Assembly: GCA_002269645.1 (NCBI GenBank)
Contig: NIVC01000476.1
Span: 1-64,000, forward strand
DNA length: 64,000 nt
Source of the DNA: Macrostomum lignano
Lineage: Eukaryota
Direction of reading: 5' to 3'
The first letter of the stretch is position 1. Each line of letters opens with the position of its first letter. Under the pieces are notes generated by a model. It was not told the origin of the DNA. It did no database searches and worked only from the letters and a program-made list of their open reading frames with translations. Both the position numbers and the translations under genes were made by a program. This document shows positions 1,793 to 62,714 of this stretch, one piece after another.

Positions 1793-1985
<193 letters not shown>

Positions 1986-6467: not shown

Positions 6468-6850
6468 AATGCGGAACCAGTTCACCAGTTAGATCCAATG
6501 CGGAACCAGCTCACCAGTTGGATCCAATGCGGAACCAGTTCACCAGTTAGATCCAATGCGGAACCAGTTCACCAGTTAGAACCAATGCGGAACCAGTTCA
6601 CCAGTTAGATCCAATGCGGAACCAGTTCACCAGTTAGAACCAATGCGGAACCAGTTCACCAGTTAGATCCAATGCGGAACCAGTTCACCAGTTAGAACCA
6701 ATGCGGAACCAGTTCACCAGTTAGATCCAATGCGGAACCAGTTCACCAGTTAGAACCAATGCGGAACCAGTTCACCAGTTAGATCCAATGCGGTACCAGT
6801 TCACCAGTTAAACCCAATGCGGAACCAGTTCACCAGTTCAACCCCAATGC
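6468..6850. repeat. 29-bp intronic minisatellite (gttagatccaatgcggaaccagttcacca)
   Basis: Tandem units; shorter paralogous array at 24065-24290. Confidence 0.95.
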
Positions 6851-18725: not shown

Positions 18726-19414
18726 ATAAAAATGCCATGAGTTCAATGCTTGTCATTTATCATGTTCACTGATATCGTTTTTAGCTAATATTTTTACTGA
18801 AATCCAGCACTAACAGTCAGAACTGATCAATGCACCTCTGCTGTTTCTATGCATATCTGTCTCTGCGCACACTGCAAGCATTCCGGAGTCTTTGATTTTG
18901 ATCAAACACATAGACTAAGACAGACAGACACTGAGATAGACAGACAGACACAGTTTCAAGAGTTTCAGCAAATGCAACCTACCGATATGTATCGAAATGT
19001 AGACTTCTTTTACTGGCTGCACTTTTACTTGACGGTTTGTGTACTTTTTCGCTCTTTTTGCTTGGCCGTTCAGCACTGCCCTGAGGAAAGGGGATCGGAG
19101 CCGCGGGATTTGCACCCTCGCACCGGGCACTGCACTGCTCTGGTGCAGCTGCACCAATCGGTTAAGCGCACCTGCACAGCTATAAACTGTTTATCGTCCT
19201 CCCTGCGGCCTGATCCCCTTTTTGCGGACTGCTGGCTGAAACATTTCGCCGAATATTTCTGTCGATCGCCTCGCTTTTCCTTGTTTTAATTTTTAATTTT
19301 GTCATTTGAGCTCCACAGCAGAACCGATGGGGAGTCCGACTCCTGCCAATGGCGTTTGATAATCACTGATTGAGTAGCTTTGCTTGGCTCTCTGACTTGC
19401 GTGTGTTCCAATGA

Positions 19415-19505
19415 CTGATTGACTGATTGATTGATTGATTGATTGATTGACTGATTGATTGACTGATTGATTGACTGATTGATTGACTGATTGATTGATT
19501 GATAA
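19415..19505. repeat. (GATT/GACT)n microsatellite
   Basis: Expanded relative to the paralogous site at ~2445. Confidence 0.95.
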
Positions 19506-22500
19506 CTCTTATCTGATTGTTTTATTACTGTTAATCAGAAATGCGAATAAAGCGTTGCGAAAATAAAGTATTACTGAAGCTGAATATTTTTTGTTTTAGG
19601 AATTTTGAAGATTGTCTGAATTGGTTTTGTTTTGTTTTATTCTGCCTGAGTAAGTTTCACAGATTGCAATCCTAGAATTGCCGATGCGTGATTGGCTAAG
19701 AAGTCTGGCCAATCTGCGTGCTATATTAAACTCCTGAATATATGCACTTTTAAGGAGTAATGCAACAACAACAAGCTTTTATTAGCTTTTATTACCTTCT
19801 ATTTTTATTATTAAAAAGCTTTTATTGCCCTGTGAAAAGCGGCTCTCGTGAGCTACGGCTTACGAGCGTGTAAAGCAGTAAAACCATTTTGGACTACAAG
19901 CCTGCGCATTTAATTAGTTGATAGACCAAGTCAATAGAAAATGGTTTAACTGCTATCGTTAGTTAATTGCTCCCATTTGATAAACAACTAACTCTGGTAT
20001 AAGAAATATCGTATAAGAAGGGTGAAGGGTGCTATTAGAGACCATAAAAGTGGTAAATATTGTACTCAGCAAAACAGCTCACAGAAAAGAGTACATGTCG
20101 GAATCTAAGCTGATTCGTGATGTTTTAAGATGCAACAATGTTTGTTGAAATTGGCGTTGACTCTCATTGAGCCGAAATCGAGATGTAGTACGAAATTCTT
20201 CGAAGAGTTTATCCTTTGCCTGAATTGCCTGGGTCGCCAAACGTTGGCGTCTTTATCGTCAGAGCCCAGGTCACTGTCCGAAAACATGACAAAAAGACAC
20301 TCCTACTAACCTAAGAGTACAATTTGGCCCTTGAAATCTTAACTATCGGAGTTAGGAGCTAGAAATGAAATTCGCTCCTTCTATAGGACACGCACTCCTA
20401 AAATTCACTCCGAAACGGCAACACCCAGCACCCACAGTAGCTCCAACTCCTCTCTCCTTATTCTTTAGCACTTGCAGAAACCTTTATGAGGTCTCCTAAA
20501 TTCACCAAGGAGTCTCCTATGTCCTTAAAGGAGCCTCCTAGCTCTTAAAATTTACTCTTGATTCTATAGCACAGGCAGGCAGGCAGAAAATGAATTTCAG
20601 GATCTTCTGTCCTCACATTTCTTCAAGCCCCTCACTGCTGAGAGAAGCTGCCGATTCCGCCATCTTCGCCAGCCTCATTGGCCTCCAATCTCGCACCTCG
20701 CTTGCCTGTTTTGCAGCCAGCCAGAGCCAGCCAATCTTCTTTGGACTGGCTGTCCTTCCAGCCTATGGGCTGCGGCTGCACTTCCGCCTCCACACGCAGC
20801 CCTGCCGCTTTCCTATAAACATCGGCTCGACTAAGGTTGGGAGGCCCAGCGATACCACAGCTGTTGCTAGCAGCAGCTTATATGTAAAATTGTTTTTTTA
20901 CAAAGTACAGCTCTGCGATATGACTGTCCACATGAAGGAACTTCTGTGCCTTGCAATCATTTCGTACTGTATAAGTAACAGTAAGTGACTACGACTGTTT
21001 CTCCTTAAAGTTAAAGAATTCAATTATTTTTGCTGATGCTGATTAGTGGGATTGAAAGTTTTCAGTTTTTGAGAACTAAGCTCTGGATGAGGTTTTGCCA
21101 TTGGGAAATTCTGTGGGGAGAATTTACACACTACAACCAGAAACAGCTGAGATTTCGTTCACTGAAACTGTGTTTATCTGCCGGTCTCCGGTAGCAGTTC
21201 CAGTGAAATCGTACTGGTAAACTGGTGAGCGTACCTCGGACACAAGGCATACTTGCTGGATTTTGAATCCAGAAGTTCAGAAGTTAAAAAAACACTGAAA
21301 ACGTTCTTCTGCTTTAGCTGTCCATGGAGCAAATGTCCATGGAGTTGTAGTTGACTTACGTGCAGTTCTATCTAATTGGCTGACTGTGACAAAAGCGTAA
21401 ACAACGCAAAATGGTCTCATAACAGGTCATATTTCGAAGTTGTTGAACCTCCACATCTACAGGCTGTGCCATCAAGGTCTCCAGAGCTGAGATCGCCAAT
21501 GCCTGGCAATCGTCTGTCTACAATCACCCAGAATGCGACTGCTTCATCAGATCAATGGACAAGCCGGGGCAATGGGTCTATTTTCTTACCAGCGACACTC
21601 CGGACCCCTCCGGCTACCAGTGGCTGCTGCTGAAGCTGACCCGAAGTGTCCCAGTGCGCTCCATCACTGTCTATGGGAGACAGGAGAGTGAGTCCTCCCT
21701 CACATTTCAATATAAATCTGAACGATAATTTGAATCAGATTTTGCTCACTAAACTTTTCTCAGTCAGCCACAGAGCCCTGGGCATCGAAGTGCTGCTCAG
21801 TGAGGAGAAGCCAGCCGGTCTGGATGAGGATGCACCCAACTGCACTGCAGCCGCTTTCAGTCACAGTCTGTCCGGACTCCAACACTGCGGCTTCACCAGA
21901 AATGACAGCAGCAGTTCACTCAGGTCGCACTTGGTGCATGAAGTGACCTGCTCAGCTGAGGCCGATGTCAAGGTTTGTCACCCAGTTGCTGCTAATCTTT
22001 CAATATTGGAATTCGCAGTGTTGCAGCATCGCATTGCAGATGGGGCAGTATGTGCTGCTGAGGAAGTTCGTGGCCAATCAGACTGACAAGATGATGAACT
22101 TTGTGTTGCTTGAAATTGAGAAAAGAGACTGCTTTCGGCATAACAGAGACAGCAGCTCTGGCTGCTCTCCAGCTGACTTCTGCAGGCAATATCAGAGCGG
22201 ATGCTTTGTGGAAGACTTGTCTCAGCTCAAGCTCAATGAGAAAGTGATGACTCGAGCTCGGCTACCAGGAAACTGCAGGGCACCTGCTGCATCAAACTGC
22301 AGCATCAGAATGCGGAACGGCAGTGATCTCTTGGAGTTGAGTTCGGTAAGAGTTCGATTGAGATAAATACTTGAGCTTGCACCAGATATGGGAATTAAAC
22401 AGCGCAGATGGGCATTCGCATTGCAGAGGGCGGTCTTGGCCAGCTCTCTGATTCAATTCTGAGAACTTTTACAGTGCGGCTGCGGATGCACGGGGCGGAT

Positions 22501-22602
22501 TTGAAGTGCCGACACAGCTGCAGCGGTGGGACTGCGATTGGCACTTCGCACACACTGGGTGTGCAGTCAGCCAGTGAGTCAGGCTTACAAACCCAGGCTT
22601 AC

Positions 22603-23640
22603 AGCCCTGCACCACTCACTACTCAAACCCTTCCGGAGCCCTGCACCACTCACTACTCAAACTCTTCCAGAGCCCTGCACCACTTACTACTCAAACCCTT
22701 CCGGAGCCCTGCACCACTCACTACTCAAACTCTTCCAGAGCCCTGCACCACTCACTACTCAAACTCTTCCAGAGCCCTGCACCACTTACTACTCAAACCC
22801 TTCCGGAGCCCTGCACCACTCACTACTCAAACCCTTCCAGAGCCCTACACCACTCACTACTCAAACCCTTCCAGAGCCCTGCACCACTCACTACTCAAAC
22901 CCTTCCAGAGCCCTGCACCACTTACTACTCAAACCCTTCCGGAGCCCTGCACCACTCACTACTCAAACTCTTCCAGAGCCCTGCACCACTTACTACTCAA
23001 ACTCTTCCAGAGCCCTGCACCACTTACTACTCAAACCCTTCCAGAGCCCTGCACCACTTACTACTCAAACCCTACCAGAGCCCTGCACCACTCACTACTC
23101 AAACCCTTCCAGAGCCCTGCACCACTCACTACTCAAACCCTTCCAGAGCCCTGCACCACTCATTACTCAAACCCTTCCAGAGCCCTGCACCACTCACTAC
23201 TCAAACCCTTCCAGAGCCCTGCACCACTCATTACTCAAACCCTTCCAGAGCCCTGCACCACTCACTACTCAAACCCTTCCAGAGCCCTGCACCACTCACT
23301 ACTCAAACCCTTCCTGAGCCCTGCACCACTCACTACTCAAACCCTTCCAGAGCCCTGCACCACTCACTACTCAAACCCTTCCAGAGCCCTGCACCACTCA
23401 CTACTCAAACCCTTCCAGAGCCCTGCAACACTCACTACTCAAACCCTTCCAGAGCCCTGCACCACTCACTACTCAAACACTTCCAGAGCCCTGCACCACT
23501 CACTACTCAAACACTTCCAGAGCCCTGCACCACTCACTACTCAAACCCTTCCAGAGCCCTGCACCACTCAATACTCAAACCCTTCCAGAGCCCTGCACCA
23601 CTCACTACTCAAACCCTTCCAGAGCCCTGCACCACTCACT
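22603..23640. repeat. 34-bp minisatellite, expanded (~30 units)
   Basis: Same unit as 5745-6030. Confidence 0.96.
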
Positions 23641-24064
23641 TGCTGCTCCCCGCAAACACCAGCTGGACAGACGGAGCAGCCGTCAATCTGACAGCTGACA
23701 CACCGGGTTGCTACTGGATGCCAATCAGCCACAGCTGCTCTGTGCAGTCACAGCGAAATGGAAACACAGCGCTTCAGCTGCTGTCAGTGAGTCTCACACT
23801 GGCCCATGGTTGCACCTGTGTATTGGGTGCATGGCAACAATGATCTGACATTTAGCTGTGAATACTGACTCATTTCAGAGCACGAACTCAAGCAGCACAT
23901 TCTCAGTGACTGTGAGCAGGAGCTGGGGAAGCTCAGCATCAATTTTGTGTCGGGTGAACCAGTCAGGACTGTTCGATGTAACGGCTCGTCGCGAGCTGCC
24001 TGCAGTTCTGTGTAAGTGTCCATGTACTTCTGTGTGTTCTTGGATGCATGTTCTCCAGTTCAAC

Positions 24065-24290
24065 AGTTAGATCCAATGCGGAACCAGTTCACCAGTTAGA
24101 TCCAATGCGGAACCAGCTCACCAGTTGGATCCAATGCGGAACCAGTTCACCAGTTAGAACCAATGCGGTACCAGTTCACCAGTTAGAACCAATGCGGAAC
24201 CAGTTCACCAGTTAGATCCAATGCGGTACCAGTTCACCAGTTAAACCCAATGCGGAACCAGTTCACCAGTTCAACCCCAATGCAGCTCAC
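24065..24290. repeat. 29-bp minisatellite
   Basis: Same unit as 6468-6850. Confidence 0.93.
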
Positions 24291-26865
24291 CTGACTGCCA
24301 TACCGAACTGCATTTCAGACCGCAGCTCCGGCCTGTCAATCAAGCTGCCTCCTGGACGAATCCGCAGTGGAAGAGAAGCTCAAGTCACCCTGCAGACGCT
24401 GGAAACAGGAAATCCGCCTGCTCAGCACTTCTGCTCAATTGGTGGAGCCAATCTGAAACAGCTCAGAGTGAGTTACTCACTGTGAATTTTCAATGCAAAA
24501 ATTATGCATAAATTTATAAATTACTGACTCTGTTGACTCCAGCTGCCATCTGAGTCAAATGCTTCATCAGTGTGGCGACTCAATGCATCGGCCAGCCACA
24601 ACCAGATGAGAGTCATCTGCCAGGTCGCTCAGACTCGCACAGACGGCACACTTGTATTCAATCAGTATGTCAGCAGTGAGCAACTCGATGTGTCATGTGA
24701 GTGGATTGCAGTTCAGCTTCTCTGACCCATCAGCAACTCAGATTGCTGAGACAATTAACCATCCATGCTCGCACCTGCACGAAAACAGACGCGTCAAGCA
24801 GCTCATGGAATGCAACTCAGCCTCTGGTGATGAAGGAGGGCGAGCCCGTGTCAGTCTCAGTTCGGTCAGTCGGTGGCAACCCTGAGCCCAGTCACCGGTG
24901 CTGGCTGCAGACGGCCGAGGGTCTCAGCACCAGCATGACCAGGGCCCAAAACACCCCCGAGGCTCAAAATCTAGGCGTTGAGACGCTGGTGGAATCTGAG
25001 TTCAGCTTAAGTTCCACAAGGCAGATGAACGGAGGCTCCTTGGAGTGCAGGGTCTCTCAGCATGGCCTCGAAGATCTGGATGGCAGATTCACACAGAACG
25101 TTACTGTATATTGTGAGTTTTCAGCTTCATACTTGTTACAATAAGTAAGTAATTACCTGCTGAGCCCTGTTGCAGGTGTGTCAATTGGAACGTACTTGTG
25201 AATTACACTTTGTTCTATTTCATTGTTGATTTATTAATTATTTATCTGTTTAGAGGCATGGACTGTCAGTCGACAGAAATTAATTATGCATCAATGATAT
25301 ACCTTTTCGCGTTGGGTCAAGAACGAATCTGGGTTAAATTTTTCTGCAGAAAAAAGTTGAAAATAGCACGATGTTGTGGGTTATTTGATCTGCTCCGCAG
25401 CTCTAAAATTCCCTCAATATCCTTATTGAGCATTCAACTCATGGAACCAATGACTGAGACCTGCACCGAGCTCTGAACACAATGATTTATTCCCGTTTTG
25501 AATTTTAAGCCTCTTATCGATGCTGTGGCAATGGTGGCTGTTGTTAGCTCGTACTTAAATGGGACCAAAGATTATGGTATCGGGAACCCTGACCCGCTAC
25601 GCTGTTTGCGAATTAACGGACGCTCCGTGATGTGCGGAGTCGTGATAGATAAGCGAGATAATGAGTAACATTTCGTACAAAACATTACTGTGTTCTGTGA
25701 GTAGGAAGGAACCTCTCGAAATTCTAGCAGAAAGCATGCACTAGCTACAGGTTCAAGCCCGACGTGACTTTGCACAATGGAAGCCACGCATGCAGATCTG
25801 TTATTGCATTGCCTTGCAGTTCCTTCGAACAGCATCGGTTGGACTGGCCAGCTGCTGAACGGCTCTGAGCTGAGTCTGCTGGGACAGACACAGGAGGGAA
25901 ACCCGAGGCCCGAGCTGCACTGCTCGATCAAGTCCGACACAGTCAGCATTGAAGGACTCACTGTGAGTTCATGTTTGCTGCTACCAAAGCTGCTGTCCAT
26001 CATTGCTGTACATGCATTCTCAGTGTCATTACTCACGGCCCTCTACTTGACCTTCGATGTTACTGAGCAGCTCACTCCTGAGCCCGATCTCAGAGGCAGC
26101 AACGGAGGCTGGATTCGGAGAGCTCGACTGACTCACCAGTTCTTTGAGCGACAGGATGAGGTCACTGTGACGTGTCTGATCAGCCAGAGCTTGCCCGGTC
26201 TCGGCGTTGTGTTCTCACCGGTGAAGAGCTCGAGGACTGTTCGAGCCGTGTTCCGTGAGCATTCAAGTTTTAGTTTGTGTGAGAATGCTCACAGGGTTCG
26301 ATCACTGCTCACAAAGTACACATTGTTCTTCAGCGAGCGCCAAAAGCAGAAGCAGTTCTGATAGCGGTGTGCTGCTGACAGTCGTTATCAGCTGCTTGGT
26401 GGCCGCAGCCGTCGCAGTGGGCGGCGCAGCGACTGCCGCGGTGCTGAAGCGGACCCGAGCAGCCGCCGCCTCCGCTGGCGTCACCAGCCAAGGAGCGGCC
26501 GTGGAGCTGCTGGCTGCTGCCAAGCCGCCCGACCCCAACGTGAGACTCAGTTTTTATTAAGCAGGTGTTTCAGGTGAGATTAACTCAGAAGCTTTTATTT
26601 CTTCCAGTCGGTTTACTACTATGCTGAGAGCTGAGGAGACCGGCAAGCGGTTCGTGTGGCCTTCGATGACTTCTAGGAGGCAGTAATGGGCTGCTGCTGC
26701 TGCTGCTGCCTCCGGTTCACTGCATTGGTCTATTTATTAGACAGCAACTTTTTTATTGTTTATTAACCCAGAGTTATTCGAAGAGTTTTTTCCCGAGGTT
26801 TCCAACTGCTGTGTACAGCAGGCAACACTTTTTTAAAACATTCTCTTTGCTTTGAGTTGGTTGTC

Positions 26866-27901: not shown

Positions 27902-30837
27902 ATTCAAAGTAGGAGGCAAATGTTGCATTAAAGTTCACTAAGACAGAACACTTCTGTGCATTTCGCATTGTTTCATGCACAGTAAATGTACAATCTGATC
28001 CGGGCTTCAATTTTAATTAATTTCAATGAATGCCATATTGGCGATAAATTTATCGAATTGCCGAGATTAAAATTCTATTCGATTCCCATTTGAAAGATTG
28101 GCACCTATCTATAGCAGCGTGCTGAAGGCTGCAGCAATGGAAAACGTGGCTTGTTTACCTACAGCGCGGTTCATCAAGGACCACTGTATATATATATATA
28201 TACAGTGGTCCTTGGGTTCATCGCATGCAAGCGGTGCAATCCATATAGTTGGAAACGCCACAGACAAATCAGGAGCGTATATAGCAACTCATTCGGTAAA
28301 ACTTTGACTTCCTGACCGACTTGATGTCCTTAGTTTAGCTTCTCGATTGCTTAAAATGCACAGCTGACTGACTGTTTCCGAAAACAGTCAATAGTCGAGA
28401 TTCTGGCAGCACTGTAGCAACTGATGAGGATGTGAACATAGTCTGAAAATGAAAGACAGTAATATAGACGGTAGTAAGTGTAGAATCCGGCTTCGCTCTG
28501 TTGAGGTTCTTCAGTTAGTCAGGCTCGAGTCGTTTTAATTTGTCATTGAAAAAGGAACCGTCATAAAGGATGCCTTTCATCGCCTCCGAAAAAAGCAAAC
28601 GACTGTCGTGACCTAAGCGGTATTTGGGACATGATGTACATGAAGTCTGGCTAACTAACGCCTTCTGTAGCAGTGTGAAGGCAATCCAGACTACGTGACG
28701 AAGAGCCTTTCTGTTAGTATTTGGGATTCAGTGTATGTCTTCAAGAAGTCCTACAGCGATCGCTTGAGCGAATCTAGGGTACCAAGGTTTCTGTCAGATT
28801 CTGTATGAGAGTTGGATTGTTGTCATGGGCTTAAAAATCAATATAAAATACCATATTATACTCCATTCTCAAGCTCAACTTTTGAAGCTGCTCGTGGGCA
28901 CTTCCGGATTCTGCGCTCATTACGGTCTAATAATAGCATTTGGCTGCGAATCCAGCGCTCTGACATTCCGCTTCGATTTTCGGACTAATTTGACACCCCT
29001 TATGCATGCAAATCCTTGCAGCAGCTTATTGTTTCACACAAGCCTAGGGATACTGTAATTCAAGCGTTCTACAAAGTGCTGAACTGCTGAGACTGAGAGC
29101 TCTTGCAGCTCGTGACTTGTATTTCTACTGCTGCTCAGAGCTGCTGCCCGAACAGGACGATCCAGTAGACGAAGTAAAGCCCACACACGGTGACTGCAGT
29201 GAAGTTTGTCGCCCCGTTCTTTCTGCTTCTAGTAGACTGATACTGCAATATTTGGCAGATACATGTAGAAGCAACACTGCTTTAGAGTCTTACAGGAACT
29301 GCTTGAGTAGGACGCTGAACTTCTTGATATTAAGTACATGTAGTCCTTGTAAATGAGCGATACAATTACTCAAGGATCTTTCAAAAGGTAAACTTGCCGC
29401 ATCTCAGGGACGGAAGGATTTAGAGATGAACTAAATTGACAATCAATCGAACACGCGGAAAAGAAGCCGGGACACAATTCGATTCAGTGCATGCATGTTG
29501 CGCCCAAATTGCTTTAAGTAGTATCCTTGGGCCATCCCATGCATGATCCGAGTTCAAGGTTTGCTTGCCAAAGTTTCCTGGCAATTTTTTCTTGTCAAAC
29601 CTGCCGAATCTATATAATGACAGCAAAACTGTGATATCGTAAGACGCGCCCTATAGTTAAAACCTAAACCTAAACTGAACCCTAACCTAAATTGCGGCAG
29701 TGAATTGACGCGCTCCCCTCACCGAGCATGGAATTTTACGAGCGTACATGTGCCTTCTGCGTGGCTGCGATTGCCGCCGAATCGCCTTGCAAACTGCCGC
29801 TCACGGATGCTCGGAATCAGCTTTTGAAACAAATCAAAACATTTGGGACAAGCTGTATATAGTTGCATAAACTATATATCCATTGCTTAGCTGCATGCAG
29901 ATTATTAAAAGTATTTGTTTTACTAAGCCGTGCTCCTGTCTCAATCTCCGGGGTTGCCCAGTGCCAGCCAGCAGGCAGTTGACGAATCGTCGAGTTTTTC
30001 GAGCACGTTCTCGCTTGGAAAGGGTGCCTACAGCCTGCAGCTCAGTGCAGCATCAGCACTGCCTGCGGACATGACGAGTCTTAAAAGACATGCGCGGAGT
30101 TGCATTGGGAGATTCGCTAGTTGACTAGCAATCGACCAACCCAGTTGACATACAGAATACACTTTCAGAGAGTTAGAAAGTGGATAGACGAAATATGATT
30201 CATTCACCGTCCCATTTCAATGTCTGATTCCTTTGAATCAACTTCCATTTTGCTCTATTCAGTCCACATCACGTGCTTCTTATGTACTCTGCAGTTCACA
30301 GCAGCTACGCCGTGTGCCGCTCTTTACTTTGTGTCACAAAAGGTCGTCTGCGCTCCCCCACCCCCAAAGCAACCGCTTAAGTGTGCGCTCAAGTGTCCGC
30401 GTACTTAGACTTGGAAGCCACGTGCATCCAGCCAACCAATCTGCTGTCAACAGTGCAGTCTGACAATTCAGTCAGTCTGTCTGCCAGCATAGTGCCTTTT
30501 GCATATACAGCGGTCGGAAAGCTGGTGCCCTGCAAGATTACAAAGAATCAGCAGCAAGAAGTTTTGTATCAAAAACTTCTTAGTCAAGGAATCTCTTAGA
30601 GATGCCTGTCCGACTGAAGGAATTTCTGTACCTTGCGGTTATACAGCATTGTGTACATCGAAGTAAGTAAGCGGTTGTTGTTCTTTTCCGGCAAGAAAGC
30701 TGTTTTTACCGATGGGTTGTTATAGGCTTTATGTATTTTATATTCCATTTTATCCCTTCTGTTACTCTGCTGTTACTAGATGTTCAAAAAAATATGTTGT
30801 CTTTGGTACAAGTTATTCAACCTCCACCTCCACAGGC

Positions 30838-33751
30838 CGTGCCATCAAGGTCTCCAGAGCTGAGATCGCCAATGCCTGGCAATCGTCTGTCTTCAATGAC
30901 GCAGGCTGCGATTGCTTCATCAGATCAATGGACAAGCCGGGCAGTGGACCTATTTTCTTACCAGCGACACTCCGGACCCCTCCGGCTACCAGTGGCTGCT
31001 GCTGAAACTGACCCGAAGTGTCTCAATGCGCTCCATCACTGTCTATGGGAGACAGGAGGGTGAGTCCTACTCACATTTCAATATCAATCTGAACGATAAT
31101 TTGAATCAGATTTTGCTCACTAAACTTTTCTCAGTCAGCCACAGAGCCCTGGGCATCGAAGTGCTGCTCAGTGAGGAGAAGCCAGCCGGTCTGGATGAGG
31201 ATGCACCCAACTGCACTGCTGCCAACTTCAGTCACAGTCTGTCCGGATTCCAACACTGCGGCTTCACCAGAAATGACAGCAGCAGTTCACTCAGGTCGCA
31301 CTTGGTGCATGAAGTGACCTGCTCAGCTGAGGCCGATGTCAAGGTTTGTCACCCAGTTGCTGCAACTCTTTCAATATTGGAATTCGCAGTGCTGCAGCAT
31401 CGCATTGCAGATGGCGCAGTATGTGCTGCTGAGGAAGTTCGTGGCCAATCAGACTGACAAGATGATGAACTTTGTGCTGCTTGAAATTGAGAAAAGAGAC
31501 TGCTTTCGGCGTAACAGAGACAGCAGCTCTGGCTGCTCTCCAGCTGACTTCTGCAGGCAATATCAGAGCGGATGCTTTGTGGAAGACTTGTCTCAGCTCA
31601 AGCTCAATGAGAAAGTGATGATTCGAGCTCGGCTGCCAGAAAACTGCACAGCAACTGCTGCATCAAACTGCAGCATCAGAATGCGGAACGGCAGTGATCT
31701 CTTGGATTTAAATATGGTAAAAATTCGACTAAGAATACTTGAGCTTGCACCTGATATGGGAATCAAACAGCAAAGGTGGAAATTCACATTTCAGAGTGCG
31801 GTCTCGGCCAGCTCTCTGATTCGGAGAACTTTTACAGTGCGGCTGTGGATGCACGGGGCGGATTTGAAGTGCCGACACAGCTGCAGTGGTGGGACTGCGA
31901 TTGGCACTTCGCACACACTGGGTGTGCAGTCCGCCAGTGAGTCAGTCTTGCCATCAGTTTTCCTGCTGTCACAGAAATCGGCATTGAAATTGCAGATACG
32001 AATTGAATGAAGCTGGCTTGAAGTTTGGCTTGCTTTGCTGGAAAGACTTTGCAGATACAGGGTCAAGTAGGAAAACTGAGTATTGGATGCAGAAAGAAAT
32101 CCTAAACATAGGAAAAGGACTCCATTAAAGGCAGTCTCAAAGTTAAAAGATGTGTCTAACCCAGAAACATCAGAAAGCTAGATGTTCAAATGGCAGAATT
32201 ATATGAATTATTGAGCCGTCTAAAACCTTCCTGTTTCGTTAAAACTAGTAAAAAGTAACCTAAGATTAGGCCTACTAATCTTAATATTTCTGCAGGCAAT
32301 ATCAGAGCGTTCAAAAACGTTCCGCATTCAGATATAAAGGGATTAAATAAAAATAATCATACCACCAAACTTTCTTATAGCCTCACTTTGCTAAGCTGCA
32401 GCTGTCTGTTCGGAGAGCACTCACTACTCAAACCTCTCGAGAGCCCTGCACCACACACTACTCAAACCCTTCCAGAGCCCTGCACCACTCATTACTCAAA
32501 CCCTTCCAGAGCCTTGCACCACTCACTACTCAAACCCTTCCACAGCCCTGCACCACTCACTACTCAAACCCTTCCAGAGCCCTGCACCACTCACTACTAA
32601 AACCCTTCCAGAGCCCTGCAACACTCACTACTCAAACCCTTCCTGAGCCCTGCACCACTCACTACTCAAACCCTTCCAGAGCCCTGCACCACTCACTACT
32701 CAAACCCTTCCAGAGCCCTGCACCACTCACTACTCAAACCCTTCCAGAGACCTGCACCACTCACTACTCAAACCCTTCCAGAGCCCTGTACCACTCACTA
32801 CTCAAACCCTTCCAGAGCCCTGCACCACTCACTTTCTGCTCCCCGCAAACACCAGCAGCCGTCAATCTGACAGCTGACACACCGGGTTGCTACTGGGTGC
32901 CAATCAGCCACAGTTGCTCTGTGCAGTCACAGCGAAATGGAAACACAGCGCTTCAGCTGCTGTCAGTGAGTCTCACACTGGCCCATGTTGCACCTGTGTA
33001 TTGGGTGCATGGCAACAGTGATCTGACATTTAGCTGTGAAAACTGACTCATTTCAGAGCACGAACTCAAGCAGCACATTCTCAGTGACTGTGAGCAGGAG
33101 CTGGGGAAACTCAGCATCAGTTTTGTGTCGGGTGAACCCGTCAGGACTGTTCGATGTAATGACTCATCGCGAGCTGCCTGCGGTTCTGTGCAAGTGTCCA
33201 AAAAGCTCGTACTTCTGTTTTTTCCTTGATGCATATTTGATTTTTGATATTCGGATGTACCTACTAAAACAGGTGAAGACAAGCACGTATGTTTTTTGAT
33301 CTGATCACTTTTAAGCCTTTACTATAATTTTGCAAAACTAAAGAATATCAATAAAAAACCTGGCCTTGTGTAGTGAAGTATTTAAAAGAAAAGGTCAAGT
33401 TAGGAAATCTTAAAAACTTCACGTGGTCATTGGACCAAATCTTCGGGTTTCATAGTTGAAACTGCAGCGGCGAGTATATTCAATTTTAAACGTTTCCTTT
33501 CTATCTTCCTTCTTACAGCTAAAAAGTGACTGCACATGACTTGATTCACTTAAAGCAGCTGGTGATGTGCTGGGAGTGCGCATCAGTCAGCGCAACTGCA
33601 GTAAAGACGATACGAAGACGTGACGGTCAGGAGGTTCAGCTTGAGATCCGCCACACTGTTTCGTCATCGAGGCGAATGAACGGAGGCTCCGTGATGTGCG
33701 GACTCGTGATAGATAAGCGAAATAATGAGAAATACTTCGTACAAAAACATT
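30838..33751 (+). pseudogene. Copy 3 (partial) of lectin/Ig receptor gene
   Basis: Lectin exons and first Ig exon are open (no TAA; reads KIRLRILELAP). Upstream exons absent, middle Ig exons deleted, last visible Ig exon cut at ~33751. Confidence 0.75.
32418..32833. repeat. 34-bp minisatellite (third paralogue)
   Basis: Same unit as above. Confidence 0.95.
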
Positions 33752-33756
33752 TCCAA

Positions 33757-35370
33757 CTACTGCAGCTGCACCCCGGCAGTAGCCACAAACTGCCTCAGCT
33801 GGTCGAGCCTCTTTCTGGCAAAGTCGTCCAAGTTGTTGAACCTCTCGAACTCGCCCACCGCGGCGTCGACGGCTGCGACGTCGCAAGCGTCGGTAGCCAA
33901 AGCCAGCGACCTCACCAGCGAGAGCTCGTCGGTGTCCTTGAACGAGCTGCACAGCCCAGCCAGCTGCTCCGCCTTCTCGCCGACTCCCGCAGCTCCTGAG
34001 CACAGCAGACACAGACAGCTCTTGGCCAGGTGGTCCTTGGCTCCGAAGCTCAACAGACTGTGCTGCTCAGCCGACACTCCCAGATCCTCAAACACCGCAG
34101 CTGCCTCTGCCAGCCTCCCACAGTCCGCCATCAACTCCCCGGCCTTGGCGCGGCTGCCCGCAGCGCTGGCCGGACTGTCCTCGCCGCTCCAGAAGTCCGC
34201 CGCTCTCAAGTAGGCATCGATGGCCTCCTCGACTTGCTGGGATGAAGCCAGCAGGTCTCCAGCCTCCTCCAGTTGTCTGGCAGCGATGCTGAACTGGCCC
34301 TGCTCTGCGTACATCTTGGCCGCTTGTTGCAGGCACCACACGGCCTTTGCTCTCGTGTCTGGCAGCTTGCGGTAGCAGTTCGCAGCCTCCGAGTAATTGT
34401 TGGCCGCATCGAGCTCGCATCGCCTTTGCTTTGAGAACAGCTCGGCTGCGGCTTCGAATGCCCGCCCAGCTTCGCTCCATTTCTGATAAAGCTTCAGCTG
34501 GTTGCCCTGCTGCAGAAGTTTGGCGGTGTCAGTAGTTTGCAGTTGGGCTGACTGGGGCTGCGTCCGCACCGGGCCTTCAGGACGCGTCTGACTGCTGGTT
34601 TCATCATCTCTAGGAAAGCTAGGGTAGCAGTTCGCAGCCTCTGAGACATTGTTGGCCACATCTATCTCCTCGAATATCGCAGTCACCGCGGCGTCTCTTG
34701 ACCAGTCACCAACTTCACTGCTTACCGCACAAATTCCGACAAGCCGCTCGAGCTGGCCCAGAAGCCGCAGCTGCAGCTCCTCATTGTCGCTCTGTTCTCT
34801 AAGCAGGCGCTCTGACCTCTCAAAGTCGGCCTCCAAGTCTCCAAGCGATTCGTGCATGGACTGGACCAGGCGAAGCAGCTCTGCCATGTCGCCTGCAGCC
34901 TCCGCCGTGGCCACCTCCTGCTTGTAGCTGGAGACGTCCTCGAGGTCCCGCTCGCACACACGCACTGCCTCAAGCACACTCGAGAGCTGGCCCGTCACCC
35001 TGCTACGAAACGAGTCGATGTCTTGCTGTACCAAATCGAATTTGTGATTGACCTCTTGCAGCTCCTGTTGGATGTCGAGAGCGAGACGATGCAGCGACTC
35101 AGCGTCTTGTTGCGGTCGCAGTAGCGCTGCACGGCTAACTGCACCTGCTGCGCGTTGTGACTCTTGTGAGTAGGCACGCAGCAGCTCTTCGACCTCCTCC
35201 TTGAGCTTGAATAGATTGGCCACATCGACACTGAGGTGTTGACTGCACATGTGGCAGCGGGAGAAAGGAGCCACACCGACTGCAGCTTTTTCGCAGATGA
35301 TGCAGAGAGGAGTTGGGGTAGCGAGAGGCGCGTCCGAACTCGAGCTGTCGCTTGAGCTTTTGCGGCTCAT
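33757..35370 (-). CDS. B-box-like/coiled-coil + alpha-SNAP (NSF attachment protein) domain fusion protein, ~537 aa, uninterrupted CDS
   Basis: C-terminal ~255 aa align by eye to alpha-SNAP (KWSEAGRAF, DAANNYSEAANCYRK, GQFSIAA, AIDAYLRAADFWSGEDSPASA, LLSFGAKDH, F.DTDE..L). N-terminus has CxxC..CHxCxxH followed by a heptad-rich region. ATG at 35370 is preceded by an acceptor (tttcag|, 35392). Confidence 0.85.
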   Translation of the reverse strand: MSRKSSSDSSSSDAPLATPTPLCIICEKAAVGVAPFSRCHMCSQHLSVDVANLFKLKEEVEELLRAYSQESQRAAGAVSRAALLRPQQDAESLHRLALDIQQELQEVNHKFDLVQQDIDSFRSRVTGQLSSVLEAVRVCERDLEDVSSYKQEVATAEAAGDMAELLRLVQSMHESLGDLEADFERSERLLREQSDNEELQLRLLGQLERLVGICAVSSEVGDWSRDAAVTAIFEEIDVANNVSEAANCYPSFPRDDETSSQTRPEGPVRTQPQSAQLQTTDTAKLLQQGNQLKLYQKWSEAGRAFEAAAELFSKQRRCELDAANNYSEAANCYRKLPDTRAKAVWCLQQAAKMYAEQGQFSIAARQLEEAGDLLASSQQVEEAIDAYLRAADFWSGEDSPASAAGSRAKAGELMADCGRLAEAAAVFEDLGVSAEQHSLLSFGAKDHLAKSCLCLLCSGAAGVGEKAEQLAGLCSSFKDTDELSLVRSLALATDACDVAAVDAAVGEFERFNNLDDFARKRLDQLRQFVATAGVQLQ

Positions 35371-35391
35371 TGTTGGATTGTCTGTGAGGAG

Positions 35392-35760
35392 CTGAAATGC
35401 AGATAAAGTTGAAACTCCACAGAGTAAAAAGAGGGAGAAGAGAGAGAAAAAGGGAGAACAGAGGGAGAAGAGCGGGAGAAGAGAGAGAGCAGAGGGAGAA
35501 CAGAGGGAGAAGAGCGGGAGAAGAGAGAGAACAGAGGGAGAACAGAGGGAGAAGAGCGGGAGAAGAGAGAGAACAGAGGGAGAACAGAGGGAGAAGAGCG
35601 GGAGAAGAGAGAGAGCAGAGGGAGAACAGAGGGAGAAGAGCGGGAAAAGAGAGAGAACAGATGGAGAACAGAGGGAGCAGAAGGAAAAAGTGCTCAATGC
35701 GCTGTGGGATTAGCAAAGCAGATTTCAAGAAATTTCCAGCCTCATTCCAAACCGACTCAC
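35392..35760 (-). other. Probable 5'-UTR intron of the SNAP-fusion gene, containing a pyrimidine-rich minisatellite
   Basis: Minus strand GACAG|GTGAGT donor at 35760; tttcag| acceptor at 35392; tandem (ctcttctccctctgttctct..) array at 35430-35680. Confidence 0.65.
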
Positions 35761-36399
35761 CTGTCAAATGCGAATGTAGTCGGATTTTGAATCAGTGAGT
35801 TCAGTGATGGTCAAGGAATACTTGGCTGAATATCCTCTGCTGCCAGTGCAAGGGTGCTGAGCTCTGCAAAAGCCAGTGTGCCACACTTTGAATCGGTGCC
35901 AGTATCGCAGGTTACAGAATTGCATCTCTGCAGCTGCAAGAATGCTCAGTCTGAGAAATTACTGAGCACACACTGGTACCTGTTTTGGGTGAATTTTCTA
36001 TTGCAGACATTTATTATTTAAACTTTGTTCATCATTGCAGCGGTGCAAAATTCGAATTTCGAGCCATTCGATATTAGAAATGTGCATCGGAGACCGGGTT
36101 GGTCTGGTTGGCAACTCTTGCTGCACTCAACTGTGCTCTGCATTTTCTGCTGCGCCTCTCATTCCGTTTCTGTGTGTGCAACCTGCGGTCTGCTGTACTT
36201 TGCCAGCAGCTGTGCGAAGAAGCTCGCGTGTGCAGAGCGGCCCTGCAGTAACAATGGAAACTGCTGGCTGAGAAACAGTGGGGAAAGAGAAGGTGCGATG
36301 AGGACTGAGAGCTGTGCTCAGGAGAGATGTGCTCAGAAGAGGTGTGCTCAGGAGAGAGAACGTTGTCAATGGGCAGTGAATTCTGTGCAATTTTAACGC

Positions 36400-36640
36400 C
36401 GCAGTGGGCGGCGCAGCAACTGCCGCGGTGCTGAAGCAGTGAGCGGCCATGGAGCTGGCCAAGCCGCCGGTTGGCCAAGCCGGCTGGCCAACTGCACCAA
36501 GCCGCCTGACCCCAACGTGAGACTCTGTTTGCATGAAGCAGGCATTTCATTTGAGATCAACTCAACAGCAATTTTATTCCTTCCAGTCGGTTTACTACTA
36601 TGCTGAGAGCTGAGGAGTGCGCAGGCGGTCCGTGTGTGGC
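36400..36640 (+). pseudogene. Orphan fragment of receptor TM exon and downstream intron
   Basis: gccgcagtgggcggcgcagc..aagccgcctgaccccaac|gtgagact and ccagtcggtttactact match 26400-26660. Confidence 0.8.
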
Positions 36641-39600
36641 ATTCTTGACGAATCAATTAAAAGTTTAATGTACAAGTTCTACATGAAGGTGAAATATGGG
36701 AATAAAATAAAACTTCTGTATACAGACACAGACAGTTTGATCCTGAACATTGAAACAGTAGACTTTTATCAGGACCTTTTGACGCGGAAGGACTTGTATG
36801 ACCTATCTGAATACCCAGAACTGTTGGTTCTGGATTCACGGACACTAGGTCATATGAATAAAATGAGCAACTGCTCCAACTCAAGCATTTACTAGGGCCT
36901 GTATGAATAAACTGAGAAATTGCTCATACTCTGATAATACTCTGAGATTGAGCCATTTCTAAGGTCAATAAGAATAAAACTGCTACCATAAACTTAATTT
37001 CTGAGCAATTGCTCAGAAAACGTTGAGGCAGCCTCCTGGCAGACTCAAGAACGAGTCGCAGTGTAAAAAGCAGATAAATCGTCAAAGCTAAACTCCTGAA
37101 CTCCTGAAACTCCGGATAGTCTCTGCCGATAAGGTTGACTGCGTAACATGTACTTCTGCCTATTATCTGTAGGCATCGACTTTTACGAGCAGGTACTTGT
37201 TGCCCTTAAACGGTCCAGCGTAGTCTGCGTGCACACGGCACCACTTTTCGCTTTCCTCTGGCCAAAATGCCCATTGGATTGATGCTCCATGGTCTTTATT
37301 TGTCTGGCAGGCGACGCATTGCTTGGGATGCCTAGTGACATCAGCGTCTATTCCTGGCCACCATACGCATTGTCTGGCGATGGATTTCATCTTGTCCGCG
37401 CCTATGTGGCCGTCGTGCAATAGTTGAAGAACTCTTTGTCGCTCCTCCTCCGGGATCAGCAGGCGTATTCCTCTGTAAAGAAGATCGTTCTCGATTGCCA
37501 GTTCGTCAAGAGTTCGAGCATATGTTGGTAACTCCTTGATTCCTCGGGCTGTCCAGCCATGCTTGACGAGCGCAAACAGTCGTCGCATCTCCTGATCAAG
37601 CATTGACGTGCGCCTAAGCCGCTGCTTGTCAACTGGTATATCGAGTAGACTGTCCTGAATCGAGTTGACGTCGAATTGCTCGCTCTCCGCGGCACTATTA
37701 TTCAATCGAGATAGGGCATCGGCGGCAGGGATCTACTCGGAACGCTTACACTCGATGACGTAATCATACTCCATGAGTGTGATCGCCCATCGCTGTAGCC
37801 TAGCAGCAGCAACCGTAGACAAGGCCTTTCCCGGGTTGAACAGGAATTTCAGTGGGTGATGGTCCGTCCTGAGCACCAACTTGCGTCCTAGCAAATATTT
37901 GTGGAGACGTTTAACCGCCCAGACTATGACTAGCGCCTCTCTTTCGATCTGTGCATAGTTTCTCTCAGCCTGTGTCAACGTCTTGGAGATAAATAGAACA
38001 GGACCGGACGACTGATCTAACACGGCTCCCAGACCCACCGGTGATGCATCAGTCGTAAGTATAATATTGTCAGCTGGATCGAATGACTTTAGGAGTCCGG
38101 CGTTGTGCAATCTTTCCATGATTGTGTTAAAGGCCTTCTGTTCTTGCCTTCCCCAGGTCCATCGCACACCTGACCTGGTTAGATTGGTCAATGAATCTTT
38201 CAACGTAGCCAAGTTAGGAATGCATTGTCCATAGAAATCGACCATTCCCAAGAACGCCTGTAGTTGTTTGAGGTCGCTTTGCTCTTTTAATCCGGCAATG
38301 GCTTCCACTTCCTCCTTTAGAGGGCGAATTCCATCTGCACTGATCTCGTAGCCCAAAAATCGTATTGACGACTTGTTTAGTACAGACTTGTCAGCATTTA
38401 TGCGAAGTCCATTGTTTTCCAGGATCTTCATTACTGTGTTGAGCCTTTCGTCATGATCAGTCTGACTTTCGCCCCAGATGAGGATATCGTCCTGGTAGGA
38501 TATCACGCCGTCGAGGTTTAGCAGGAGTTTATCTATATATGACTGGAAGATAGCGGGTGCTTGTTTTACCCCAAAAGCCAGTGAGGTTGGACGAAACAGG
38601 CCAAAGGGTGTGCTCCAAGTTTGCATCTGACTTGTCTCGGCGTCGACTGGTACCTGCAAGTATGCGTTTGTGAGATCTAGCGTGGAGAATTTCCGGGCTC
38701 GACCCAATCTGGACATCACTTCATCTATCGATGGCGTTGTCGATACCATGTCTTCCAAGACTGGGTTCAGTGTTATCTTATAGTCGCCACAAATCCTGAT
38801 ACTTCCAGATTGCTTTCTGACACACACTATAGGCGTGGCCCATTCGCTCGATTGCACTTTCTCCAACTGTCCTTTCAGATTCCATTCTTCGTAGCTCGTT
38901 CTTTACGTCTTCTTGAATACCATAGGGAATCGGTCTTGGCTTGCAGAAAACAGGTTTTGCGCCTGGCCTGATCGATAGTGACGCCTTCACGGTGTCGACT
39001 GGAGACATGCGACTTGATTGCCGTTCTTCTGTGGTGTTAGCATTACCACCTTGGGTTATGGCGACATAAAGCTCCGGCTCCAGCTCTGCAATCCAGTCCA
39101 AACCATATATGGGCTCCACATCTCTGTGGTCTACGACAAACAATGGCAGGTTCGCTACTGCACCGCCACGCTCTACTCTGACAGTAACTTCTCCTAAAAC
39201 ACGCACCGGATCTCCTTGGTATGCTGTAAATCATCGGGCTGTCGGTCTTAAATTGGATTTCAACGGAAGGCCTTGATACATCTTTAGCGATACAAATGAT
39301 GAGACGGATCCAGTGTCCATAATCATACGAAGATTGGCCCCATTGACCAGCAGAAGCCTTGTTATCCTGCGCCTGCTGGGCTCCTCACAGCTGCTATTTA
39401 CGGAGAAAATGCTGTCAAGACCTACAGGTCCTGAAGAATCTTCCTGCGGTTCGATCGTCTGTCTTGACCGTTGAGCAGGTCTTGATGATTAGACTACACA
39501 CAGCTTTCAGATGGCCAGTCTTTCCTCAATTCAGGCAGGTCTTTGAACGGTGCTGGCAGACGTCCTTGCGGTGTCCATCCTTGCCACAGCAGAAACATTT

Positions 39601-45564: not shown

Positions 45565-47350
45565 ACTACTACCTGGCAAGCGACTCAGGAGCCCAGGAAC
45601 GAGCTGTGTGAGTTCTTCGCCGCCATTGTCAACGCGCCGCCACCCCCGCTGCCAGACAGTCTGACGCTGCCGCCGGAGATGCCGTTGCCGGCAGAGGAGA
45701 GCTTCAGCCTAGTACCAGTCAGCACAGCCGACGTTGTGAGGCTCACCTAACAGCCACCGGGCGGGAAAGCGCTGCGTCCGGACGAGGTGCCCATCGAGGC
45801 GCTGCGCGCATCCAATGTGTGGCCAGTGAGGTCGCCAGAGTGATGAATCGCGTGCTCTTCGGTGAGGAGGCACCCAAAGAATGGACCACGGCGCACAACG
45901 TCGCAGTTCCTAAGAAGCCGGGCACCACGAGGCTTGAGGAGCATCGAGGCATCTGCCTTCAGTCCTGCGCTGCGAAGCTGTTCAACCGGATGCTGTTATC
46001 GCGGTTGCAGCCCGTGCTGGATCCGTTACCTGCGCCCAGAGCAGAACGGGTTCCGGCCCCATCGCGGCACAGTAACGCTCATCCTGGCTCTTCGGCGAGT
46101 CATCGAGGAAGCACGGCTACGCCAGTCGATCCTGATTGTTATCTTCATATAGATTTCAAGAAGGCATTCGACTCGGTCGTCAGGTCTGAGCTCCCAAAGG
46201 TGCTCCGTGCGTACAACGTGACAGAGCAGCTGATTTCCGCCATCATCGCGATGTACCGTGATACGAAAGCTGCTGTTTGAACACCGGACGGCCTATCGGA
46301 CTTCTTTGAGACATCCTCCGGGGTGCTTCAAGGAAATACGCTTGCGCCGTTCCTGTTTGTTATGGTGCTTGACTGGGTGGTGCGGACCGCTCTTCCTACC
46401 AACGACGACGGCTTTCTGTTGCGGCGACGCGTGGGTCGACGTCAACCGGAGAGGTGGCTCAGCGTGCTTGGCTACGCCGACGACCTCGCCCTGCTGTCCT
46501 CAACTGTCGAGGGTGCCCAGCGACAACTGGACAAGCTAGTTGCTGTTGCGGCGAGTGTCGGCCTGGTGGTCAACACGCAGAAAACCGTCGCGTGCTCTGC
46601 GTGCCGGACGACATCGAGGCTGCAATTTTATGCCGAGGCGCTGATGGACAGGCGACAGAGCTTCCGCGTTGTCAGCAGTTCCTCTACCTCGGCGGTCTGG
46701 TTCCTGGCGTCCGCGAGGATCTGCGGCGTCGCCGCGGGCTTGCCTGGGCTGCCTTTCGTTCTGTGAGGGCAGTCCTGCAGTCCGAGGCCTTATACCTGAC
46801 CTCCAGAGGGCGGCGTTGTACCAGGCGGTGATCGAGACCGTCCTGCTGTACAACGCCGAGACATGGATGCTGACGGAGTCGCTCGAGCAGAAAGTTGACG
46901 CGGCGCACTCTGGCCTGCTGCGCGCCGCCTTCAAGATCGGCTACGAGCGAGACCAACGCGGCTTTGTATCGCCGCGCCGGCCTGGTGCGCGACCTAGGTT
47001 GCGCCGTCGGCGACTCCAGCTGGCAGGTCACATCATCCGCGCCGAGTCGTACTGCCCAGAGCCGGTGCAGGAGGTGCTGCTGCTAACGCTGCAGGCACCC
47101 TATATACCGGCGGGGGCAGGCGCGCACTCCGCGTTTCGTCGACTGCCTACTGGCTGACGCCGGCGCCCCGGATTCGGCTGGCGGCGTGGCGTCCATTCGC
47201 GACCTGGCTTTGAAGCGTGCCCTGTGACGCTAACTGCGTTGTTGTGTTGTTGTTTACTGTACTATTATTATATGTTATTATTATACTATTATATATTATT
47301 ATTATTACGTGTGTTATGTTATTATATGCTATTATTATATGTTATTATTA
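45565..47350 (+). mobile_element. RTE-like non-LTR retrotransposon, 5'-truncated, frameshifted, with (TAT/TTA)-rich tail
   Basis: VPKKPG..HRGICL, EQNGFRP, FIDFKKAFDSV, GVLQG.TLAPFLF, YADDLALL, VNTQKT, LLYNAETW; ends TGA at 47226 followed by an AT simple-repeat tail. Confidence 0.92.
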
Positions 47351-49950: not shown

Positions 49951-51632
49951 AAATTTAAGAGAAGATATATTTCTTAGAAATAAACTTTTATTGAACTTTT
50001 AAGTATAAAGTATAGTATTCCACTGTAGCTATGGCTACAGCTATGGGATCCTATGGCAAATATGGTAAAATAGGTGCTTATAACAACTACAGATATGCCT
50101 ACAGTAGATAGCTGCTCTTACAGCTATAACTACAAAAATATAGTAGTTTTTGTCATATTCCATAGATTCCTATAGCCATAGTTATTAATTTAAAAATTAA
50201 AAAATATTAGAAACAAGTAGAGTAAAACAAAGATACTTTGGTAAACTATATTATAGACTTAGAAACTTATAAGTTATACCTAATAAATTACAACAAAACA
50301 TTAACAAACCATAACTTTTATTAATGTGAAAAAGTTAAGCAATACTTTTAGTAGTGATTAAGTATCATTACTCTGTAAAAAGATAAAATATAATCTTTCA
50401 AAGGCAATCAAGTGTTTGTTTTATTTTCTATTATTTTTTGTAGTTGTTTAAGCACCAAGTTATCTTCCTGGTTCAAAATATTTTGTTTCTTAGACTTTAA
50501 GATATTTTGTTAAAACTATGGCTATGGCCATGGGAACTATAGAAATATAGTAATATTGGGGTTTTCAGCGTAATTGTAATGAAACAGACTATGGGATATG
50601 TTTTCATGTGCAATATTAGTCTGTTAGCATACATTGGCATATAAGAGCTAAGAAAGCAAATTTTGTTCTAGTGTACATTGGTACATAATACTAATATTAG
50701 GTATGCCCATTCTTATAATATTATATTTTAGCTGCTATGTGAATAAATAAGACATTATTGGCATAGCACTATATGGATAATATTATCATTATTAAAATAA
50801 GATCATAGGAATTAGTGCTTTTATAATGATTATTAATTACTAACTAGTGTTCTACCACTAAACACCATGGATTGCAAAGACTATAACTATAAATGTAACT
50901 ATAAATTTTTGCCACCTGACTATAGCTGTATATTTTTTGATCAAAATCTTTATAATCCATATTTTCCTATAACTATGGCTATAATATAACAAAATTATAA
51001 AAAAAGCTGCAAACAAATTAATATGAGAAATCCTAAATATGTTATTACAAATCTTATCTATCTCTTTATTACATATCTAATGACTTCCTAAAAGGTAATA
51101 TGTAAAAGGACTTTAATATTTTAACATTGCTTTAGGAAAACATGACTTGCTGCAGATGCAACTACATTATCTATTTATAATTATATCCATAATTACAGGG
51201 TAACAATATTACTACTTTCTAATTATAAAAACTTGTTTCAAGAGAGAAAATATTCATTTCTGGCCTAATTTGACCTTAATTAACTGAAAAATTAAGTGTT
51301 GCCATTACTTTTTATAAAAGTGCACAAATATTTTATTCATTTTAAAGAATTTTTATTTGTTTAAATTTTCAAAATTTTAATAGTATCAGAATACCAAACT
51401 ATTTGGAAAATAAAAAAATGTATTGTAAGTTACTAAAGTGTATAATTGTTAAGAAAGTATAAATGTGAAAAATACTTAGCATGTAACAAGTGGAATGATA
51501 TTAACATTCACAGTTATTTAGTCAAAAATGTGTTTATAGCCTAGTTATTAGGTATATAATGCTTATTATCAGCAAATGCTAAAAATGCAAGACAAAGTAC
51601 ATTATTATTCTAACATTTACTGGATCCCACAG

Positions 51633-62686: not shown

Positions 62687-62714
62687 GTGAGGGATTTAGG
62701 GGGGCTGCTTCCAT

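Follow-up and report, generated by a model that had tools for sequence, protein, structure and literature searches.

A predicted chimeric gene in Macrostomum lignano pairs a TRIM-NHL-like zinc-knuckle and coiled-coil front with a divergent alpha-SNAP domain

In a 64,000-nucleotide (nt) stretch of the Macrostomum lignano genome (assembly GCA_002269645.1, contig NIVC01000476.1, positions 1 to 64,000; hereafter the window), the minus strand carries at 33757-35370 an intact open reading frame (ORF) of 537 codons plus a TAG stop, bearing out a first-pass annotation made from the sequence alone. Comparison of this ORF with other M. lignano genes makes us highly confident that it is a real chimera of a TRIM-NHL-like front and a divergent SNAP domain, and the TRIM-like/alpha-SNAP fusion proposed by that annotation appears genuine. 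From the N- to the C-terminus, the predicted protein consists of a Ser-rich start, a Cys/His zinc knuckle, ~170 heptad-rich helical residues, a linker and the SNAP domain. The reading frame contains no frameshifts, stops or indels over 1.6 kb, and only a retrotransposon pol ORF gives a longer stop-free stretch in the window. No second copy of either half was found elsewhere in the window, and NHL sequence was found neither in the chimera nor anywhere else in the window. The features of the gene are as follows (window coordinate = 35371 minus gene nt; helix predictions are from AlphaFold2 (AF2), with confidence given as the predicted local distance difference test, pLDDT).

33757..35370, minus strand: chimeric ORF, 537 codons plus TAG; the only copy in the window.
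34660..35370, minus strand: coding part derived from the zinc-knuckle/coiled-coil/NHL family (residues 1-237), with 89-95% nt identity to at least 10 paralogues in loci L002-L006.
35236..35304, minus strand: zinc knuckle, C23-x2-C26-x12-C39-H40-x-C42-x2-H45; ligand pattern also present in paralogue P0014; no Pfam zf-B_box match.
34732..35244, minus strand: helical, coiled-coil-like region (residues 43-213), predicted from AF2 helices at low pLDDT, heptad score and weak Pfam coiled-coil matches.
34623..34662, minus strand: 40-nt templated filler at the junction, encoding D-VANNVSEAANCY; 36/40 identities to the gene's own SNAP segment and 37/40 to the SNAP-like gene S6.
34371..34410, minus strand: internal SNAP segment DAANNYSEAANCY, the filler source; near-identical across all SNAP-like paralogues.
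34525..34619, minus strand: linker from an S6-type N-terminus, comprising one 'FPRDDETS' unit (Cys lost) and 'TQPQ..TSDTAKLLQQ'; blastn to L001 16102-17178 gives 26/28 and 72/81 identities.
33805..34524, minus strand: SNAP domain (residues 283-522); Pfam PF14938 E=2.1e-46, PDB 3j96_G E=4.8e-26, and Foldseek.
35371..36358, minus strand: 5' flank derived from the NHL-family parent, with a putative promoter and 5' untranslated region (UTR); 88-91% identity to paralogue flanks in L003 and L005.
35433..35681, strand unassigned: 42-bp CT/GA-rich minisatellite inside the 5' flank, longer than in the L003 paralogues.
33737..33756, minus strand: ~20 nt of 3' flank common to SNAP-like paralogues, at the end of which homology stops in the comparison with those paralogues.

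Close homologues of both halves were found among M. lignano proteins only. The N-terminal half (residues 1-~240) shares 82-90% amino acid (aa) identity with ~550-aa proteins ending in NHL repeats (Pfam NHL; the best PDB relative of this propeller is TRIM71, E=1.6e-21), and the C-terminal half (~268-537) shares 85-90% with stand-alone SNAP-domain proteins of 320-360 aa. Both belong to multicopy, intronless families that are specific to M. lignano (92-95% nt identity) and lie as single-exon genes in tandem arrays in the same assembly. The zinc-knuckle/coiled-coil/NHL array has at least seven copies within 40 kb of NIVC01000200.1 (L003 3001-40269), and the SNAP-like arrays have ~7 genes each on NIVC01000090.1 (L001 1143-19979) and NIVC01000684.1 (L007 911-18590). 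Two of the NHL-family copies carry Ser in place of the zinc-motif residue C39.

Within the SNAP-like arrays, the SNAP cassettes are ~90% identical and the N-termini unrelated. Six array members have transmembrane (TM)-like segments in their N-termini, with Kyte-Doolittle means over 19 residues of 2.0-3.5, and S6 starts MGNICSC, with 18 Cys among the first 100 residues, an N-terminus that looks like a myristoyl/palmitoyl anchor. Compared with these array genes, the chimera is the sole member lacking a TM or lipid-anchor-like N-terminus. In GCA_002269645.1, several of the array genes have no annotation or have been fused into a single gene model. A deeper-branching M. lignano paralogue, P0021 (BOX15_Mlig015185g1-3), with 287 aa and 37% identity to the chimera, has no anchor and a C-terminus reading ..PRLA; its position suggests that the SNAP-like clade predates the recent arrays.

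Alignment with both families resolved the junction. Homology to the NHL family always stops at gene nt 710-712, in the linker between coiled coil and propeller. The filler (nt 709-748) is a copy of SNAP-internal nt 961-1000 and overlaps the N-parent sequence by a GATG microhomology. It is followed at nt 752-779 by a match to one unit of the S6 N-terminal repeat 'CCFPRD(E/D)E..S', with the cysteines lost, and from nt 806 the chimera and S6 stay colinear past the stop codon to the end of the shared 3' flank. The break thus lies in the linkers of both parents and is in frame. The SNAP parent appears to be a lipid-anchor-type (S6-type) member, with the fusion putting another module in place of its anchor. 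Upstream, the homology to NHL-family 5' flanks extends for ~1 kb, with a longer 42-bp minisatellite. As judged from these alignments, a ~2.6-kb block (33737-36358) combines the 5' flank, zinc knuckle and coiled coil of an NHL gene, in frame, with an S6-type linker and complete SNAP cassette.

The templated filler, the microhomology, the retained promoter region and the lack of a poly(A) tract point to a template-switch or end-joining event at the DNA level, and we propose that template switching or polymerase-theta-type end joining would have created the chimera. We also weighed and rejected an origin by retroposition: the parents themselves lack introns, ~1 kb of the 5' flank survives, no poly(A) tract is present and the filler is templated. 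Substitutions private to the window copy, counted against 8 NHL-family and 11 SNAP-family paralogues, give similar private synonymous divergence (dS) in the two halves (0.062 and 0.074), which fits a single event in which both pieces were copied from their arrays. Taken together, these comparisons identify the ORF as an apparently young, M. lignano-specific chimeric gene produced by DNA-level rearrangement, with its two parents and its in-frame breakpoint mapped. One chimera-private change, GGACGC to GTAAGC at 34721-34726 (minus strand), makes a 5' splice-site-like GTAAG; splicing from it to the nearest TAG acceptors (~34610 or 34619) would frameshift into a stop.

Since each parent belongs to a multicopy family in a highly repetitive genome, the join might instead reflect reads from two arrays that were misjoined during assembly. 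However, the two families have no mutual homology that would mislead an assembler, and the join is in frame. The joint also contains a 40-nt templated filler with substitutions of its own together with a rearranged S6-type unit, and both halves carry many private substitutions that are absent from the sampled paralogues. Given the structured joint and these private substitutions, we regard an assembly artefact as highly improbable.

The combination was then sought elsewhere. Word-indexed homology searches (5.8 billion clusters) returned no protein spanning both halves, and in an exhaustive HMMER scan of 1.84 billion representatives none of the best 150 of 1017 matches spans both. A literature search found no description of the chimera's architecture or of the anchored SNAP-like family. 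The earlier suggestion that this architecture is uncatalogued held among the databases searched, where the zinc-knuckle/coiled-coil plus SNAP arrangement appears to be new to the SNAP family.

To characterise the N-terminal half, its zinc motif and helices were compared with those of TRIM proteins. The first-pass annotation had read the motif as CxxC-x13-CHxC-x2-H; the motif is present, but its spacer has 12 residues, not 13. It offers six possible zinc ligands; a full B-box has eight. It is preceded by 22 residues only, which are Ser-rich, and its ligand pattern is kept in the 45%-identical paralogue P0014. The annotation's B-box gained no profile support in this comparison: no Pfam zf-B_box match was obtained at E up to 10, a profile of the N half searched against PDB sequences recovered no TRIM protein and nothing meaningful (best E=1.2), and the label comes only from the UniProt naming of the parents ('B box-type domain-containing'). 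No RING was matched by Pfam in the chimera. The ~190 residues that had been described as coiled-coil-like correspond to residues 43-213, in which low-pLDDT AF2 helices are predicted at 43-83, 90-139, 145-159, 162-193 and 198-213, a/d heptad hydrophobicity is strong at ~85-135 and 150-175, and there are weak Pfam matches to coiled-coil families. A TRIM-type coiled coil downstream of a zinc finger is thus predicted. The AF2 model was used solely for helix boundaries and for the SNAP fold match. Relative to TRIM-NHL proteins (TRIM71/LIN-41, Brat, TRIM2/3, Thin), the chimera keeps its parents' zinc knuckle and long coiled coil, but it has no RING, its zinc motif fails the Pfam B-box model and its NHL propeller is replaced by SNAP.

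In animals, alpha-SNAP is normally a stand-alone housekeeping adaptor. The near-complete alpha-SNAP domain noted at first pass was recovered by Pfam with 159 bits (cut-off 25), aligned to profile positions 35-274 of 282. Among PDB sequences, the best match is the mammalian alpha-SNAP of the 20S complex (3j96_G, E=4.8e-26), followed by Sec17 (4.6e-14), with gamma-SNAP at just 1e-4, and a Foldseek search with the poor AF2 model ranked Sec17/alpha-SNAP first. The chimera therefore has the SNAP alpha-solenoid in common with alpha-SNAP/Sec17, at 25-37% identity to canonical alpha-SNAPs, and differs from them in its ~280-aa N-terminal extension with zinc knuckle and coiled coil. Its clade is multicopy and lineage-specific, whereas most animals have a single alpha-SNAP (PMC6712407).

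Residues with described roles (PMC6457932, PMC11532144, PMC5540461) were next compared with the canonical protein. The N-terminal hydrophobic loop (F27/F28) is absent: the alignment begins only near alpha-SNAP residues 40-47, leaving gaps in the loop columns. Of the eight SNARE-contact residues compared, K122 (as R), L197, L198, Y200 (as F) and K203 are kept and R116, K163 and R239 are lost, to Q, G and D, respectively; K167 and K94 are kept as well. An R116A alpha-SNAP is left with 2% disassembly activity (PMC6457932). Of the two acidic NSF-N-binding sets defined in PMC11532144, D217/E249/E252/E253 has become G/L/D/A and the tail D290-D293 is absent. The penultimate Leu (L294) is kept, in a protein that ends ..VQLQ. 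The missing loop, missing acidic C-terminus and retained Leu that had been singled out at first pass were therefore confirmed by alignment, but all kept and lost residue states are common to every stand-alone SNAP-like paralogue and are thus traits of the family rather than of the fusion. No family member, not even the divergent S2div or P0021, has lost the penultimate Leu, and this invariance argues for a C-terminus that still has some role.

The closest natural comparison is with the anchored SNAP-like paralogues of M. lignano (BOX15_Mlig022924g1/g2, Mlig021756g2 and Mlig027212g2, and the unannotated S1-S7 in NIVC01000090.1). These share with the chimera a cassette that is 85-90% identical in aa, the same atypical residues and the lack of introns, and the chimera's linker is that of the S6 type. 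They differ in being 320-560 aa long and in their N-termini, which carry a TM helix or are Cys-rich and of the MGNICSC type; the chimera has neither. In engineered TM-anchored yeast Sec17, an N-terminal membrane anchor substitutes for the apolar loop (PMC5540461). The natural anchored family of M. lignano has an equal layout; the engineered protein differs in keeping the canonical SNARE- and Sec18-binding residues, and the chimera has lost the anchor again.

From these residue states we propose a mechanism for the fusion product. The rearrangement would have exchanged an NHL propeller for a SNAP solenoid or, equivalently, a lipid anchor for a dimerising coiled coil, with transcription from the inherited NHL-family promoter. 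The product would be a soluble, coiled-coil-dimerised SNAP-like protein presenting two SNAP solenoids. Docking on SNARE bundles is probably kept, as in the family (L197, L198, K122R and K203 are retained), and coupling to canonical NSF-driven disassembly is probably poor (R116Q, K163G, R239D and the loss of both acidic sets). With docking kept and coupling poor, the chimera would serve as a modulator or competitor and not as a standard alpha-SNAP.

The first-pass annotation had suggested that the product may be an oligomerised SNARE-binding decoy or regulator, possibly related to immunity or secretion. As a defence decoy, an oligomerised SNAP would poison SNARE recycling in a regulated way, by analogy with soybean Rhg1. 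The alpha-SNAP variants at that locus are tandemly repeated, depart from the canonical form at their C-terminal NSF-interaction sites and have been shown to act in nematode resistance; alpha-SNAPs there with atypical C-termini impair NSF function and are cytotoxic (PMC6712407). The M. lignano family also lies in tandem arrays, and the chimera has an atypical C-terminus without either acidic NSF-binding set. However, the Rhg1 proteins are from a plant, have only a few C-terminal residues changed and carry no N-terminal fusion. The atypical residues of the chimera are, moreover, common to every stand-alone member rather than special to the fusion, and the loss of R116, K163 and R239 may weaken SNARE binding too, which makes a decoy function less likely. 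Nothing among the neighbours or domains of the chimeric gene links it to immunity. We consider a defence role very unlikely.

To assess whether the chimera is under selection, changes private to the window copy were divided into synonymous and nonsynonymous. The first-pass annotation had named the ratio of nonsynonymous to synonymous rates (dN/dS, omega) as a check, and its outcome was split: the SNAP half appears constrained (13 synonymous, 12 nonsynonymous; omega 0.28, p=0.002), but the N half (10.5 synonymous, 20.5 nonsynonymous; omega 0.61, p=0.10) is indistinguishable from neutral. Both halves combined give p=0.001. These values are subject to incomplete sampling of paralogues and to gene conversion within the arrays. 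On balance, we lean slightly towards an expressed gene for a soluble, coiled-coil-dimerised, non-canonical SNAP that would modulate rather than recycle SNARE complexes.

Several observations weigh against this interpretation. Some of the private changes in the SNAP half may predate the fusion or occur in unsampled paralogues, and the N half, as noted, evolves at a rate compatible with neutrality. The probability of encountering no stop is ~0.10 after 60 neutral substitutions, so that intactness by itself is weak evidence. The gene is surrounded by transposons and the remains of duplications. The rearrangement left behind the parental 3' UTR and poly(A) signals, and no AATAAA occurs in the 200 nt beyond the shared 3' flank. 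An exact look-up found the 537-aa protein absent from sequence records, and no annotated M. lignano protein was found that covers both halves. Three of the ten sampled NHL-family copies are broken by frameshifts or early stop codons; either genuine decay or errors in the long-read assembly could account for this. The AF2 model is poor (pLDDT 54, with zinc knuckle and linker <50), and zinc binding and dimerisation of the chimera, like its SNARE binding and NSF coupling, are inferred.

Many of these points are also what would be expected of a non-functional by-product, that is, a recent in-frame rearrangement in a repetitive, duplication-prone genome that has not yet decayed: a single unannotated copy amid transposons and duplications, a non-significant omega in the N half, a ~0.1 chance of surviving point mutation, a lost parental 3' UTR, and parent families that evolve fast (pairwise omega 0.3-0.7) and include broken copies. 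Such a by-product fits less well with the low private omega of the SNAP half, with the lack of any indel in 1.6 kb despite ~56 private substitutions, with breakpoints that keep both domains and the frame, and with the ~1 kb of 5' flank that was kept. We view it as the main rival and a real possibility, albeit a somewhat doubtful one.

Young chimeric genes are known from other animals, for example the tandem-duplication chimeras of Drosophila (PMC5460883). As in those cases, the M. lignano gene is recent and has two parents, one supplying the 5' end and promoter and the other a 3' coding domain. It differs in that both parents lie in intronless arrays and in that the joint has a templated insertion instead of a simple duplication boundary.

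The surroundings of the gene were also examined. The first-pass annotation had placed the ORF inside a decaying array, which does not hold for this window: membership of the surrounding repeats was rejected, there being no second copy of either half, and the repeats nearby are retrotransposons and a segmental duplication unrelated to the gene. In the latter, 1943-8900 and 18914-26340 are 94-97% identical, and a partial third copy (30810-33200) is truncated ~550 bp from the chimeric gene. The duplication contains weak CD80-like Ig C2-set ORFs (7268-7708 and 24701-25141). A 34-bp minisatellite carried by the duplication, with up to 30 copies (5744-6033, 22603-23640 and 32418-32833) is open in all three frames and yields long spurious ORFs, such as 22408-23691. 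Ty3/gypsy-type pol ORFs with reverse transcriptase, RNase H and integrase lie at 10714-13684 (plus strand), 37166-38866 (minus strand) and 45612-46277 (plus strand), the element at 37-39 kb being ~0.8 kb upstream of the chimera's inherited 5' flank. A short ORF at 36617-36895 (plus strand) had no Pfam match; it contains 'YTDTDS', reminiscent of motif C of family-B DNA polymerases, and is possibly a Polinton/Maverick-like fragment. Further away are an AT-rich block (50001-52000, GC 0.28), dense minisatellites (52300-58600, periods 17, 22-174, 51 and 24 bp) that produce long low-complexity ORFs with spurious Pfam matches (DUF2345, Cornifin), and a Kelch-repeat exon (61997-62794, plus strand) that is 99% identical to the M. 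lignano BTB/BACK protein A0A1I8GAZ6.

M. lignano has arrays of divergent SNAP-domain genes with interchangeable N-termini, and the chimera would be a further step, in which a SNAP cassette came under the promoter of an unrelated TRIM-NHL-like family and acquired that family's oligomerising front end. A more ambitious interpretation, which we put forward as unlikely, is that the chimera is functional and its coiled coil dimerises a SNARE-docking, NSF-uncoupled SNAP, as one product of a flatworm-specific system that repeatedly gives a conserved SNAP cassette new N-terminal targeting modules. Through these modules (TM helices, lipid anchors and now the coiled coil with its zinc knuckle), non-canonical SNAPs would be placed in advance at particular membranes or complexes, and if this were true it would constitute a previously undescribed layer of animal SNARE regulation. 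Without expression, the chimera simply adds another rearrangement to a very fluid genome. With expression, it would represent a clean, datable birth of a new gene by domain swap, with a readable junction, and a natural experiment on a SNAP solenoid that is dimerised and off the membrane. It would also provide an entry to a naturally membrane-anchored SNAP family that mirrors the engineered TM-Sec17. Compared with the chimera itself, the arrays of anchored SNAPs are arguably a more interesting lead.

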